64,000 nucleotides of DNA from Podarcis melisellensis (GCA_964234715.1 OZ174281.1), one strand, 5' to 3'; positions 17,526 through 23,254 are shown, counted from the first letter of the stretch. A program made the numbers and translations. The notes: a model not told the origin generated them from the letters alone.

Positions 17526-18686
17526 TTCGGCTTCTTGTTACTGGAACAGAGCAGGATCTCAGTGTTTGAGTTCCTATAAATACTGTTGAGGGGGTGTGGT
17601 GTATAGCCTCCAATGTTCTGGGCAGAGAGGAAGTTCCCAGGCTAGTGTGCCTTTTCTTCTTTTGTTCCTTAATTACTTGAGGGATATCTTGAGTGATTTC
17701 TTGAGTGATATCCTGAGTACCACTTAGGTGGGTCATTAGGTGTGGATTAGTTGCTAAAGTCTTTGTGTCTTGACCTCTTGAACTTTGTGAAGAGTTTTTC
17801 TGAGAAGATGGCTGTACTGCACTTAGTTGTGCTCTGGCTTGGCTTCGTGTATAGGGGCGAGCTGTGGTTTTGTGGCCTGTGTCAGCCAGATCTGTGTAGG
17901 GATTGCAGGGGGGTGCAGCATCCGGAGGTGCCACCATGGTTTGGCTACTGGATGGTGTCTGTAATTTATCTGTGGAGAGGGTCTGGGTTTGGGTCTGGTG
18001 TGGTTGATTGGTGATAGCGTTCTGTGTGCCTCTGGATCTGGTGTCAGTTTTTGTGGGGAGGGCTAATTTCCAGATGTCTGGCAAGCGGGATGTGTCGTCA
18101 CGCTTGTTCATGTTGTGAGGGTGTTTCTCTATCTCGATGGCTTCCATGATTATTCTCTTGTGGTGATGTTCCATGTTAAAGAGCAATTTGGAATCTGCAA
18201 AATTAATTTCGTGTCCTGTTTCTTTCATGTGTTGGAAAAGAGAGGAAGTTTTTTTCTTCTTTTTTGACGGCATTCTTGTGTTCTGCGATACGTGCATTTA
18301 TTCGTCTGTTTGTTTGTCCAATGTACGTGGCTGGGCAGACTTTGCAGGGTATTTCATAGACCCCTTGGTTTTCCAACTGGATTTTATCCTTGGGGTTTCT
18401 GAGGATATTGGCTATTTTTTTGGTTGGTGCAAAAGGCTGTTTTGATATTGTGTTTATGGAGGATTTTGCTAATTTTATCTGTAGTGCCCTTGATATAAGG
18501 AAGGAGGGCCATGCCATTGTTTTCTTCTGTGTCTTGGTTTTTGGGGGGTGTTTCTTTTTGGATTAGCTTCGTAACCCTGTTTTGCTGGTATCCATTGGCA
18601 ATTAACACATTTGAGAGATTCTGTAACTCAGTTGTCAAGTGGTCTTTGTCACCCAGGCGTTTGGTTCTGGAGATGAGAGTCTTGGC
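17500..18686 (-). pseudogene. Truncated Penelope ORF: thumb/linker + GIY-YIG endonuclease + Thr/Gln/Pro-rich C-terminal extension, with two frameshifts
   Basis: Pieces lie in three frames (ORF track 18384-18740, 18203-18517, 17500-18297), joined at homopolymer runs near 18415-18421 and 18248-18265. No RT core is present. Confidence 0.88.
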
Positions 18687-19222
18687 TCTCCCCACAAAAA
18701 CTGACACCAGATCCAGAGGCACACAGAACGCCATCACCAATCAACCACACCAGACCCAAACCCAGACCCTCTCCACAGATAAATTACAGACACCATCCAG
18801 TAGCCAAACCATGGTGGCACCTCCGGATGCTGCACCCCCCTGCAATCCCTACACAGATCTGGCTGACACAGGCCACAAAACCACAGCTCGCCCCTATACA
18901 CGAAGCCAAGCCAGAGCACAACTAAGTGCAGTACAGCCATCTTCTCAGAAAAACTCTTCACAAAGTTCAAGAGGTCAAGACACAAAGACTTTAGCAACTA
19001 ATCCACACCTAATGACCCACCTAAGTGGTACTCAGGATATCACTCAAGAAATCACTCAAGATATCCCTCAAGTAATTAAGGAACAAAAGAAGAAAAGGCA
19101 CACTAGCCTGGGAACTTCCTCTCTGCCCAGAACATTGGAGGCTATACACCACACCCCCTCAACAGTATTTATAGGAACTCAAACACTGAGATCCTGCTCT
19201 GTTCCAGTAACAAGAAGCCGAA

Positions 19223-19275: not shown

Positions 19276-19347
19276 CCCAACTTTTACACGGGAAGACACC
19301 CGAGGACACCAAAACCTGCATTCCTGTACCCGTGAAAATCTACGAAA

Positions 19348-19382
<35 letters not shown>

Positions 19383-19689
19383 AGCTGAATATAAGAGAAA
19401 TAGACCCGCAGCACCAACTCTCCAACAGATCTTGTTCCCCAATTAGGTTTCTAAGGCCCCTTTGCCCACCCACTGAGCCATAGCTTTGGATTTAGCACAG
19501 AGAACAAGCTAAGTATCTGTGTTTTCTCAGCAGAAGAGAGGATTAGCCCAGCTCTGTTGTTTCCTGATATCACCTCCAGCCAATGTGGTGGGGTGTGGGG
19601 AAGCCTGCCCAGTTTAGCTCTCATCTGAAAGCATCTCCAGCTGGTAGTTTCTCCAGCAGCCAGTCACCTATATGCTTTAGTCTCGCCAA

Positions 19690-22431
19690 AGACTCTCCTC
19701 CCTGAAAGAGAGGGGAGTGGTTGTGGACGGGAGTCCGAGCACCGCTCCTAGCAGGGGGCGTTGCCCCCTGCCTCCAGCTCACCTGGCTGGCACTCACGCC
19801 CCCCCCCGGTGGCCATCCAACCAGGTGCCATGGGGGGGCGTGTCCAGCAGCCTTTATGCTGCAGTGCCAGCCTCCCCGCGGCCTCATTTCTCTTTGTCGT
19901 TGGATTAGCATCAACTGGTGATGAACCCCTGGTGAATAAACCCACTTGTTTCGCGATCCAATGCCTAAGCCAATACCTTTTCATTGCTGTAATCAATAAA
20001 GTTGTGGCCTTTTCTAGCCCATTAACCTTATATCACGTGTCCCTGTGTCTTCATTTTACTTCGCGGGGGTCGGGTCCTCGAACCACAAAGACTCTCCTCC
20101 CTGAAAGAGAGGGGAGTGGTTGTGGACGGGAGCCCGAGCACCGCTCCTAGCAGGGGGCGTTGCCCCCTGCCTCCAGCTCACCTGGCTGGCACTCACGCCC
20201 CCCCCCGGTGGCCATCCAACCAGGTGCCATGGGGGGGCGTGTCCAGCAGCCTTTATGCTGCAGTGCCAGCCTCCCCCCGGCCTCATTTCTCTTTGTCGTT
20301 GGATTAGCATCAACTGGTGATGAACCCCTGGTGAATAAACCCACTTGTTTCGCGATCCAATGCCTAAGCCAATACCTTTTCATTGCTGTAATCAATAAAG
20401 TTGTGGCCTTTTCTAGCCCATTAACCTTATATCACGTGTCCCTGTGTCTTCATTTTACTTCGCGGGGGTCGGGTCCTCGAACCACAAAGACTCTCCTCCC
20501 TGAAAGAGAGGGGAGTGGTTGTGGACGGGAGCCCGAGCACCGCTCCTAGCAGGGGGCGTTGCCCCCTGCCTCCAGCTCACCTGGCTGGCACTCACGCCCC
20601 CCCCCGGTGGCCATCCAACCAGGTGCCATGGGGGGGCGTGTCCAGCAGCCTTTATGCTGCAGTGCCAGCCTCCCCCCCGGCCTCATTTCTCTTTGTCGTC
20701 CTGGGCGAGTCACCCACCCTCCACTCCCTTTGAGTTAGGGCTTAGGTCATTGGCCTTGCTATGGACCTTAGGTTGGTCGCCCCGGTTGCCCGGGGGGCCT
20801 GGTAGGAGTTTTTCCATTTGGCATTAGGCTTTTTGGTTTTTTCGCCTACCTCGTAGCAATCGTCACAACTTTTTGGTGGTATTGGTGGGTAGGTTAGGCA
20901 TTGGAATAATCTGTTGTGGTGTGTTGAAGTGCTAGGTGTGGCCATCGCCTATGCCTTCAATTTCTAGGGGTATTCCGTTAATGGAATCTGGCGGTCGTGT
21001 ATTCCGTCCGAAGCCTGCTTGGCGGGAGGCCATGGCACAACCCTCGGTGACATCAGGGGTGAGCCTATAGTTGGATTAGCATCAACTGGTGATGAACCCC
21101 TGGTGAATAAACCCACTTGTTTCGCGATCCAATGCCTAAGCCAATACCTTTTCATTGCTGTAATCAATAAAGTTGTGGCCTTTTCTAGCCCATTAACCTT
21201 ATATCACGTGTCCCTGTGTCTTCATTTTACTTCGCGGGGGTCGGGTCCTCGAACCACAAAGACTCTCCTCCCTGAAAGAGAGGGGAGTGGTTGTGGACGG
21301 GAGCCCGAGCACCGCTCCTAGCAGGGGGCGTTGCCCCCTGCCTCCAGCTCACCTGGCTGGCACTCACGCCCCCCCCCGGTGGCCATCCAACCAGGTGCCA
21401 TGGGGGGGCGTGTCCAGCAGCCTTTATGCTGCAGTGCCAGCCTCCCCCCGGCCTCATTTCTCTTTGTCGTTGGATTAGCATCAACTGGTGATGAACCCCT
21501 GGTGAATAAACCCACTTGTTTCGCGATCCAATGCCTAAGCCAATACCTTTTCATTGCTGTAATCAATAAAGTTGTGGCCTTTTCTAGCCCATTAACCTTA
21601 TATCACGTGTCCCTGTGTCTTCATTTTACTTCGCGGGGGTCGGGTACTCGAACCACAAAGACTCTCCTCCCTGAAAGAGAGGGGAGTGGTTGTGGACGGG
21701 AGCCCGAGCACCGCTCCTAGCAGGGGGCGTTGCCCCCTGCCTCCAGCTCACCTGGCTGGCACTCACGCCCCCCCCCCGGTGGCCATCCAACCAGGTGCCA
21801 TGGGGGGGCGTGTCCAGCAGCCTTTATGCTGCAGTGCCAGCCTCCCCCCCGGCCTCATTTCTCTTTGTCGTCCTGGGCGAGTCACCCACCCTCCACTCCC
21901 TTTGAGTTAGGGCTTAGGTCATTGGCCTTGCTATGGACCTTAGGTTGGTCGCCCCGGTTGCCCGGGGGGCCTGGTAGGAGTTTTTCCATTTGGCATTAGG
22001 CTTTTTGGTTTTTTCGCCTACCTCGTAGCAATCGTCACAACTTTTTGGTGGTATTGGTGGGTAGGTTAGGCATTGGAATAATCTGTTGTGGTGTGTTGAA
22101 GTGCTAGGTGTGGCCATCGCCTATGCCTTCAATTTCTAGGGGTATTCCGTTAATGGAATCTGGCGGTCGTGTATTCCGTCCGAAGCCTGCTTGGCGGGAG
22201 GCCATGGCACAACCCTCGGTGACATCAGGGGTGAGCCTATAGTTGGATTAGCATCAACTGGTGATGAACCCCTGGTGAATAAACCCACTTGTTTCGCGAT
22301 CCAATGCCTAAGCCAATACCTTTTCATTGCTGTAATCAATAAAGTTGTGGCCTTTTCTAGCCCATTAACCTTATATCACGTGTCCCTGTGTCTTCATTTT
22401 ACTTCGCGGGGGTTGGGTCCTCGAACCACAA
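19690..22431 (+). mobile_element. Non-autonomous Ngaro-type (DIRS-order, tyrosine recombinase) retroelement array A-B-A-B-A-C-B-A-B-A-C-B
   Basis: A (~211 bp): 19690, 20089, 20488, 21260, 21659. B (~188 bp): 19901, 20300, 21072, 21471, 22244. C (372 bp): 20700, 21872. The array contains the split-direct-repeat order A-C-B-A-B (20488-21658). There is no long TSD, only a shared CAA at both ends, and no coding capacity. Confidence 0.8.
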
Positions 22432-23254
22432 GAAATCATTAGCAGATCTGGCTGTAGCTATGGACTTAAGAAAGAGACTCGTTTGACCACTTAATGGCCT
22501 CACTTTCAACAAAATCCCATATTACAAATATAAAACCACAGACTTGGAGGGGACCCAAAGATAACATCCAAAACAACCAACCACTCTCCCCCACCAGTTG
22601 TAAAGTGGTAGGAAATCCTTTTTGCTTAATAGAACAACATGACCTATGTCAATATATACAGATCATTCTGTACTAATACAAAAATATGTTGAATAATGCC
22701 TGCAGTATGAAAACTAGGCATGCCATTTCCAGTTAAGTTCCATAATAGCACCGAGGGTGGCAGGCAACATGGGAAGATCTCCAAGAGCTGTGTGGCTTGG
22801 ATGGTTTGAACAACCACAACTTACCTCCCATTCTTACACAGGAGGAGCATAATTATTTTCAAAGAGTAAATGCGTAAAATGATGAGGAGCCATTGCTCTA
22901 GCACTGTTATAAGATGCTAACTGGTGATGTATTTAATCCCAGAGATGCTTGACATTCAAAGAGTGAGTGATGTACGGCAGAGCATTTGTATGGGCCATCT
23001 GGAGATGTACACCAAACTCCACACTTGATGAGGAACTGAAACTTCTGATTCCAAGACCTAAATATGCATCAATCCCCGCTCTGGTTTTAATTGATTCCTA
23101 ACAAGAAGAATTTTGGCAAACCGCAACATGCTTTTGTGTGAAATGCCTCTGTTGTTACAATATCATAAATTGTTTTTAATCATTTGCACATATTATCGTG
23201 TGATGGCAACCACAGATCTGTTGAAATGAATATAAGATTCTGATTAGGGGAAAA

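Follow-up and report, generated by a model that had tools for sequence, protein, structure and literature searches.

Elements of the Ngaro, PAT, and VIPER groups share a split-direct-repeat organization in which the repeats and the internal region follow the order A1-internal-B1-A2-B2 (bioRxiv 10.1101/2021.08.05.455354; PMC4157794; PMC6681497). SIRE, a short non-autonomous derivative of VIPER, is equal to the A2+B2 region of such an element (PMC6681497). In DIRS-1, the primer of reverse transcription is unknown, and a hairpin at the 3' end has been proposed to fill this role; the ICR of DIRS-1, which is essential after first-strand synthesis, is complementary to both outer termini side by side (PMC7192593). 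Among other retroelements, Ty1 requires CYC5/CYC3 5'-3' cyclization for retrotransposition (PMC7969010), the self-priming LTR retrotransposons of the Tf1 group replace the tRNA primer with an intramolecular RNA duplex (PMC4600332), and HIV-1 contains a local poly(A) hairpin that is present at both copies (PMC2645353). For Ngaro elements, no paper was found that deals with read-through, with the ends of transcripts, or with RNA signals acting in cis, and no cis-acting helix of the kind analyzed here has been described for DIRS, PAT, or Ngaro elements.

Organization of the array

The array (Table 1) lies within the 64-kb stretch of lizard DNA that was analyzed (hereinafter, the window). Its first base is exactly the start of an A module and its last base is exactly the end of a B module. 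Three modules make up the array, A (209-213 bp, GC-rich), B (190 bp), and C (370 bp), the copies of which are 98.6-100% identical to one another. The canonical split-direct-repeat order, A-C-B-A-B, is found at 20488-21658, with the repeats 99.5-100% identical; the complete array represents a permuted series of the modules. Alternatively, the array can be divided at its B|A joints into AB units of 399 bp and ACB units of about 771 bp, and the canonical A-C-B-A-B then corresponds to an ACB unit with an AB unit behind it. The termini of the array coincide with the same joint (left flank ...GCCAA|AGACTC, right end ...CCACAA|GAAATC), and no target-site duplication was found at the array ends. The correspondence of SIRE to A2+B2 parallels the 399-bp AB units of the lizard array, although SIRE comes from kinetoplastids, is unrelated in sequence, and lacks a core carrying an antisense segment.

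Ngaro elements encode a reverse transcriptase/RNase H and a tyrosine recombinase but no methyltransferase. The array encodes neither of the two enzymes, and no Ngaro protein is encoded in the window; no open reading frame (ORF) exceeds 129 aa in the array or 67 aa in C, and ORFs of at least 150 aa in the window had no match in Pfam. With the reverse transcriptase and recombinase missing, the array must be a non-autonomous derivative, and its sequence does not discriminate between Ngaro and PAT-like elements. A search of the array, C included, against Rfam yielded no family at E <=1. There is no other or diverged copy of the element within the 64-kb window, and relatives were retrieved neither by protein queries from its ORFs nor by exact-pattern scans of metagenome and viral contigs. 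Contigs of runs X1-X20, which are labeled with four different organism codes, contain 16-67% of the A-C-B-A-B words, so that the family, or parts of it, is common to more than one species label.

The array was also considered as an LTR or TRIM element, in which BA would be the LTR and C the internal region, but this parsing was rejected because there is no TG...CA end and no tRNA primer site after A; the absence of a polypurine tract abutting B and of a target duplication further rules out this reading. A bacterial promoter and terminator scan was set aside as irrelevant to a lizard genome. Upstream of the array, a 67-nt inverted repeat (18000-18066 / 18682-18748, 96% complementary) surrounds a 615-nt segment, and a (TA)n microsatellite occupies 19345-19380, about 310 bp before the array start.

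Table 1. Features of the array and of the complementary segments, numbered from the first letter of the window
Feature	Coordinates	Strand	Remarks
Whole array of the non-coding split-direct-repeat element	19690..22432	+	Order AB AB ACB AB ACB
Non-coding core C, first copy	20700..21069	+	Identical copy 21872-22241
Repeat B directly after C (B1 in canonical A-C-B-A-B)	21070..21259	+	
C segment antisense to B, three blocks	20862..20905	+	GTCACAACTTTTTG 20862-20875; GGTATTGG 20878-20885; TTAGGCATTGGA 20894-20905
B segment pairing with the C segment	21128..21179	+	B positions 59-110 of 190; TCCAATGCCTAA 21128-21139; CCAATACC 21141-21148; CAATAAAGTTGTGGC 21165-21179
Distal AATAAA, putative poly(A) signal, inside the helix	21166..21171	+	Followed by GU/U-rich sequence
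Proximal AATAAA, outside the helix	21106..21111	+	Mostly unpaired in the predictions for C+B1 and A2+B2
C segment, second copy	22034..22077	+	Offset +1172
B target, second copy (last B)	22300..22351	+	
Same B segment in the B after A (B2)	21527..21578	+	Preferred partner of C in the full-length equilibrium fold
Second partial complement, GGCTTAGGTCATTGG	20739..20753	+	Complementary to B 21129-21142, 8 + 6 bp, one bulge

Complementarity between the core and repeat B

An earlier note on this DNA claimed that a segment of C pairs in order with three blocks of the downstream B, including AATAAA, and this claim was borne out. RNAduplex gave an almost uninterrupted 42-bp helix between the two segments (36 Watson-Crick and 6 G-U pairs; -48.7 kcal/mol), with the middle block in a register different from the one originally drawn and with the distal AATAAA located 8 bp inside the outer end. 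All the C and B strings that the note quoted were found in the sequence, GGTATTGG one base to the right of the place given for it, and the repetition of the entire arrangement in the second C and the last B was found as described.

The complementarity was compared with chance by chaining exact Watson-Crick matches of at least 7 nt. The chain between C and B amounts to 29 nt, compared to 8.4 +/- 3.1 for dinucleotide shuffles of C (maximum 23; 0/300 reach the observed value) and 7.9 +/- 2.8 for natural 190-nt segments of the window (maximum 17; 0/400). No other pair of modules showed anything comparable, with chains of 9 for C and A, 7 for A and B, and 8 for C with itself. Other measures separated the pair from shuffles less sharply: the 12-mer alone scored 24 in a strict ungapped local alignment (17.4 +/- 2.2 in shuffles, maximum 27), a loose gapped alignment of C with B scored 71.5 and was equaled in 15/500 shuffles, and the best 70x70 duplex energy, -53.5 compared to -45.1 +/- 3.6, was reached in 5/150. 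These tests, which disregard colinearity or allow G-U pairs everywhere, are weaker because C is rich in G and U. The colinear complementarity between C and B, and with it the helix, is thus real and non-random, the significance on energy alone being modest rather than overwhelming (5/150).

Several short motifs recur in these modules. TTAGG is present five times on the sense strand of C (20735, 20742, 20768, 20824, 20894), compared to a mean of 0.94 in shuffles (0/1000 reach five), and TAGGT four times (P = 0.004, shuffles); these motifs could be alternative partners for CCUAA of B, UAGG-type binding motifs, or weak 5' splice-site-like sequences (GTAGGT, 20889). One of the five TTAGG motifs lies in the second partial complement to B (Table 1), which is present in C, as the earlier note had observed, but is unused in the predicted folds. 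The commonest non-homopolymer 6-mer is GTTGTG/CACAAC, with five occurrences in A, B, and C (20518, 20864, 20913, 21036, and 21172), the overlapping CCACAA/TTGTGG occurs four times (including 21254), and an imperfect palindrome across the B|A joint (20081-20125) carries GTTGTG/CCACAA-type motifs in its arms. GTTGTG/CACAAC, the significance of which is modest, may be a recombinase or factor site.

Predicted behavior of the RNA

In the minimum-energy fold of the RNA with one B, the helix is present with pair probabilities of 0.91-0.97, and the probabilities are 0.91-0.98 across every fold. The helix is predicted to be more stable in the sense than in the antisense strand, both as RNA (-48.7 vs -36.1 kcal/mol, a difference of 12.6 kcal/mol) and under DNA parameters (-28.2 vs -23.0 kcal/mol). 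In silico, the distal AAUAAA lies within a stable helix, as is the case for the poly(A) signal of HIV-1: the predicted cost of opening it is 7.2-7.3 kcal/mol in C+B1, whereas 1.8 suffices in isolated B and 1.2 in A2+B2. For the proximal AATAAA, a mostly unpaired state is predicted in both contexts (in the accessibility run, this hexamer was represented by 21105-21110, one base off).

A different picture emerges from the full-length A'-C-B1-A2-B2' fold, in which C pairs with B2 (-362.9 kcal/mol, vs -356.9 with C:B1 forced) and the probability of C:B1 is about 0. In this model, the C:B2 pairing would be a contact of the 5' region with the 3' end. Given that the equilibrium fold favors C:B2, an element occluding the poly(A) signal would have no thermodynamic preference for B1, and any discrimination between the two copies would be purely kinetic. 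Kinetic trapping during transcription, via nucleation 27-38 nt before the hexamer emerges, is conceivable.

Conservation of the complementary blocks in relatives

Comparative data came from four RNA runs labeled as the same species, the reads of which (25-208 per run) were aligned on 19600-22500. Most of the reads are 95-99% alike and hence derive from other copies of the family, and the unaligned ends of reads reveal three more diverged relatives. In the first of these, GTCACAACTT(T) is followed by CCTT-GTATTGG-CGG-TTAGGCATTGG; in the second, the same sequence precedes CTTT-GGAATTGG-CAG-TTAGGCATTGG; and the third has TATTGG, a 24-nt insert, and then TTAGGCATTGG. Thus, the core of block 2 (TATTGG or AATTGG) and TTAGGCATTGG are exact in all three relatives and GTCACAACTT in two of the three, and the spacers are 3, 3, and 24 nt long, compared to 8 nt in the array, with the flanks also different. 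The preservation of the blocks amid replaced spacers and flanks suggests selection on the blocks, and the helix is probably under selection, although block conservation, seen in the C of the relatives alone, could have causes other than pairing. The earlier note had tied its proposal to conservation in relatives, and the C blocks are indeed kept exactly in these read ends.

When the C sequences of the diverged relatives are paired with B of this window, 30-31 Watson-Crick pairs form, with energies of -38 to -40 kcal/mol; in two of the relatives, pairing of the hexamer is confined to its AAA half. Within the C segment, conservation is lowest in the U-run that faces the hexamer, where the most expressed relative has a T>C change at 20873 and another a 2-nt deletion at 20874. 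Among the fixed variants in expressed relatives, none is listed in B 21128-21179, compared to four in B 21070-21123 (the first 54 nt). If the pairing is selected, copies with GGAATTGG in C would be expected to carry CCAATTCC in their own B.

RNA depth and transcript ends

Nearly all read pairs of the bulk run X24 have the first mate on the minus strand; provided that the library follows the usual stranded protocol, transcription of the family is mostly sense. In run X21, plus-strand reads are found on the first C only and minus-strand reads on the second only; apparently, multi-copy reads are placed by an arbitrary rule, which makes per-copy depth unreliable, and the single-cell runs, having reads on both strands, are unusable as 3' tags. 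With per-copy values to be read accordingly, X24 depth increases along C to a maximum of 17.6 and 25.5 in the bins immediately upstream of the hexamer that follows C, falls by 45-63% in the bin after the hexamer (6.6 and 13.9), and then stays at about 7-8 through A. Reads cover all of A upstream of C and extend over the B|A, A|C, and C|B joints; the depth of the A|B joint bins (20279-20375, 21443-21539) is only 0.2-1.0. No poly(A)-tailed loose read ends are listed at any B in the four runs. At face value, these depths weakly suggest that a sizeable share of transcripts end at the B that follows C, with little transcription across the A|B joint, which is not what a poly(A) switch predicts.

In expressed relatives, a direct A|B joint may be missing or interrupted by a spacer. 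RNA depth is even from the 3' half of B into A. Every B (21129-21172 in the first of the copies that follow C) contains two CCAAT boxes 12 bp apart, located 20-40 bp upstream of AATAAAG, a layout also compatible with a promoter of the CCAAT/TATA type that would initiate transcription about 30 bp downstream, within B. In that case, the RNA would lack the hexamer of the B in which it starts, and the element could do without a read-through device.

Comparison with known systems

If C:B2 is the pairing adopted by the genomic RNA, the lizard helix would resemble the CYC5/CYC3 pair of Ty1, as well as the bipartite primer-binding site of Ty3, in that 5'-proximal and 3'-end sequences are complementary over a long range and the complementarity is kept in minimal non-coding derivatives (PMC7969010). 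About 14 nt are paired in Ty1, compared to 42 bp in the lizard helix, and the function, which has been shown for Ty1, is a candidate one here; furthermore, the elements differ in class, one being an LTR retrotransposon with a DDE integrase and the other belonging with the tyrosine recombinase elements. With the Tf1 group, the lizard element would share an intramolecular RNA duplex. The Tf1 transcript pairs through its first 11 nt with the primer-binding site beside the LTR, and RNase H cuts it there. The lizard helix is not known to be cut or to prime.

The poly(A) hairpin of HIV-1 is similar to the lizard helix in that AAUAAA is contained in a helix, more stable pairing of which inhibits polyadenylation in HIV-1 (PMC2645353). 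In both elements, moreover, the signal is duplicated in identical form, and the problem is to use the distal copy alone. HIV-1 discriminates between the signals by means of 3' enhancers and a splice donor, whereas the lizard element has a single partner strand, 260 nt upstream, and the effect of pairing on polyadenylation is putative.

The DIRS-1 ICR and the C segment are both internal non-coding stretches complementary to part of the terminal repeats. The C segment differs in targeting the interior of B, with nothing at the B end or at the A start; the best complement of C amounts to 9 nt for A and to 7 nt for the B end. Because its target is internal to B (Table 1), the C segment is not an ICR, and the suggestion of the earlier note that it might be a DIRS-ICR-like guide for template switching or circularization does not fit the definition, the element termini not being covered. 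An ICR-like splint closing single-stranded cDNA was also considered and rejected, given that the complementarity ends at 21179 and leaves the other side of any plausible joint uncovered. In split-repeat elements, the B1|A2 joint is said, following Poulter and Goodwin (2005), to already play the role of the ICR.

A candidate helix of the genomic RNA and alternative explanations

We tentatively infer that the C-B helix forms in vivo as a cis-acting, long-range, sense-strand helix of the genomic RNA that is used in replication or packaging; this is the reading we prefer, at a level of confidence that leaves ample room for others. The host of the helix would be a non-autonomous Ngaro-type (split-direct-repeat, tyrosine-recombinase) retroelement. 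Given that the helix ends some 10-20 nt short of the predicted cleavage site, it would link the core, at about 165-205 nt inside C, with the B copy of the RNA 3' end. It could be a cyclization or 3'-end-anchoring helix, such as retroelements use to start or guide reverse transcription, or, alternatively, could serve dimerization and packaging by the proteins of a partner element. Either role would explain why the core is retained in a non-coding derivative. The distal AAUAAA of whichever B pairs would be buried as a physical consequence of helix formation, and this burial may help with read-through of B1 as a secondary, unproven effect.

A role in polyadenylation proper, as in the earlier note, would make the pairing a one-time event: B1, on emerging from the polymerase, would zip onto the lone antisense strand of C, so that its AAUAAA is buried and B1 is read through, and B2, left without a partner, would be used. 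The depth of the hexamer within the helix (8 bp) and the cost of opening it in C+B1 compared to A2+B2 (7.3 vs 1.2 kcal/mol) are as this account predicts, and so is the lack of a complement to B in A (chain of 7). The A1-internal-B1-A2-B2 order, moreover, makes it necessary to read past B1 if the B1|A2 joint has to be part of the RNA (bioRxiv 10.1101/2021.08.05.455354; PMC4157794), and HIV-1 polyadenylation is inhibited by stabilizing the helix around AAUAAA (PMC2645353). At equilibrium, however, C:B2 is preferred by 6 kcal/mol, leaving kinetics as the sole support for a choice of B1. Burial of the hexamer, the physical side of the proposal, has in silico support (7.3 vs 1.2-1.8 kcal/mol), and several results lean against the functional side. 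Relatives vary most in the U-run opposite the hexamer, and pairing is reduced to AAA in two of them; the proximal AATAAA stays open; X24 depth falls past the hexamer after C (17.6 and 25.5 to 6.6 and 13.9) and is 0.2-1.0 in the A|B bins; no poly(A)-tailed loose ends are listed at any B; and partial, unaided read-through would suffice. We regard this account as unlikely, and slightly more so the reading that a one-shot co-transcriptional antisense strand makes two identical poly(A) signals unequal, which would be a solution undescribed for any retroelement. Somewhat less doubtful, though still not favored, is an unused relic: rearrangement or a template switch of reverse transcription would have placed part of B in the core in inverted orientation, and the family would simply have inherited it since. 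Three exact blocks split by indels have the look of an old inverted duplication, the significance based on energy is modest, and the copies in the window, being young and identical, are uninformative. What speaks against a relic is that the blocks are 100% kept in relatives in which the sequence between and beside them was replaced, and that the G-U pairs of the spacers stabilize the sense strand only.

It is improbable that the blocks are inverted protein sites on double-stranded DNA, either CCAAT/ATTGG for NF-Y-type factors or accessory sites of a recombinase. The strict colinear antisense order of three different blocks over about 50 nt is unexpected for independent factor sites, the conserved TTAGGCATTGG reaches well beyond the CCAAT core, and the motif counts are only modestly above those in shuffles. 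Such sites would nevertheless account for the promoter-like placement of the two CCAAT boxes of B, for the three ATTGG motifs in C, one of which, TCATTGGCC at 20747, fits the NF-Y consensus, and for the five occurrences of GTTGTG/CACAAC in A, B, and C, including one beside the B|A joint. Far less credible still is a 42-bp stem with a 222-nt loop acting as a double-stranded RNA trigger for small-RNA silencing of the family, a proposal to which only the length and stability of the stem lend support, and an element would not be expected to conserve a trigger of its own silencing.

Implications for split-repeat retroelements

The production and copying of RNA in split-repeat retrotransposons with a tyrosine recombinase are almost unstudied. 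A 42-bp helix between core and repeat in a 770-bp non-coding derivative is a small, mutable target for defining cis requirements in these elements, and the same helix could show whether RNA structure picks which of two identical poly(A) signals is used.
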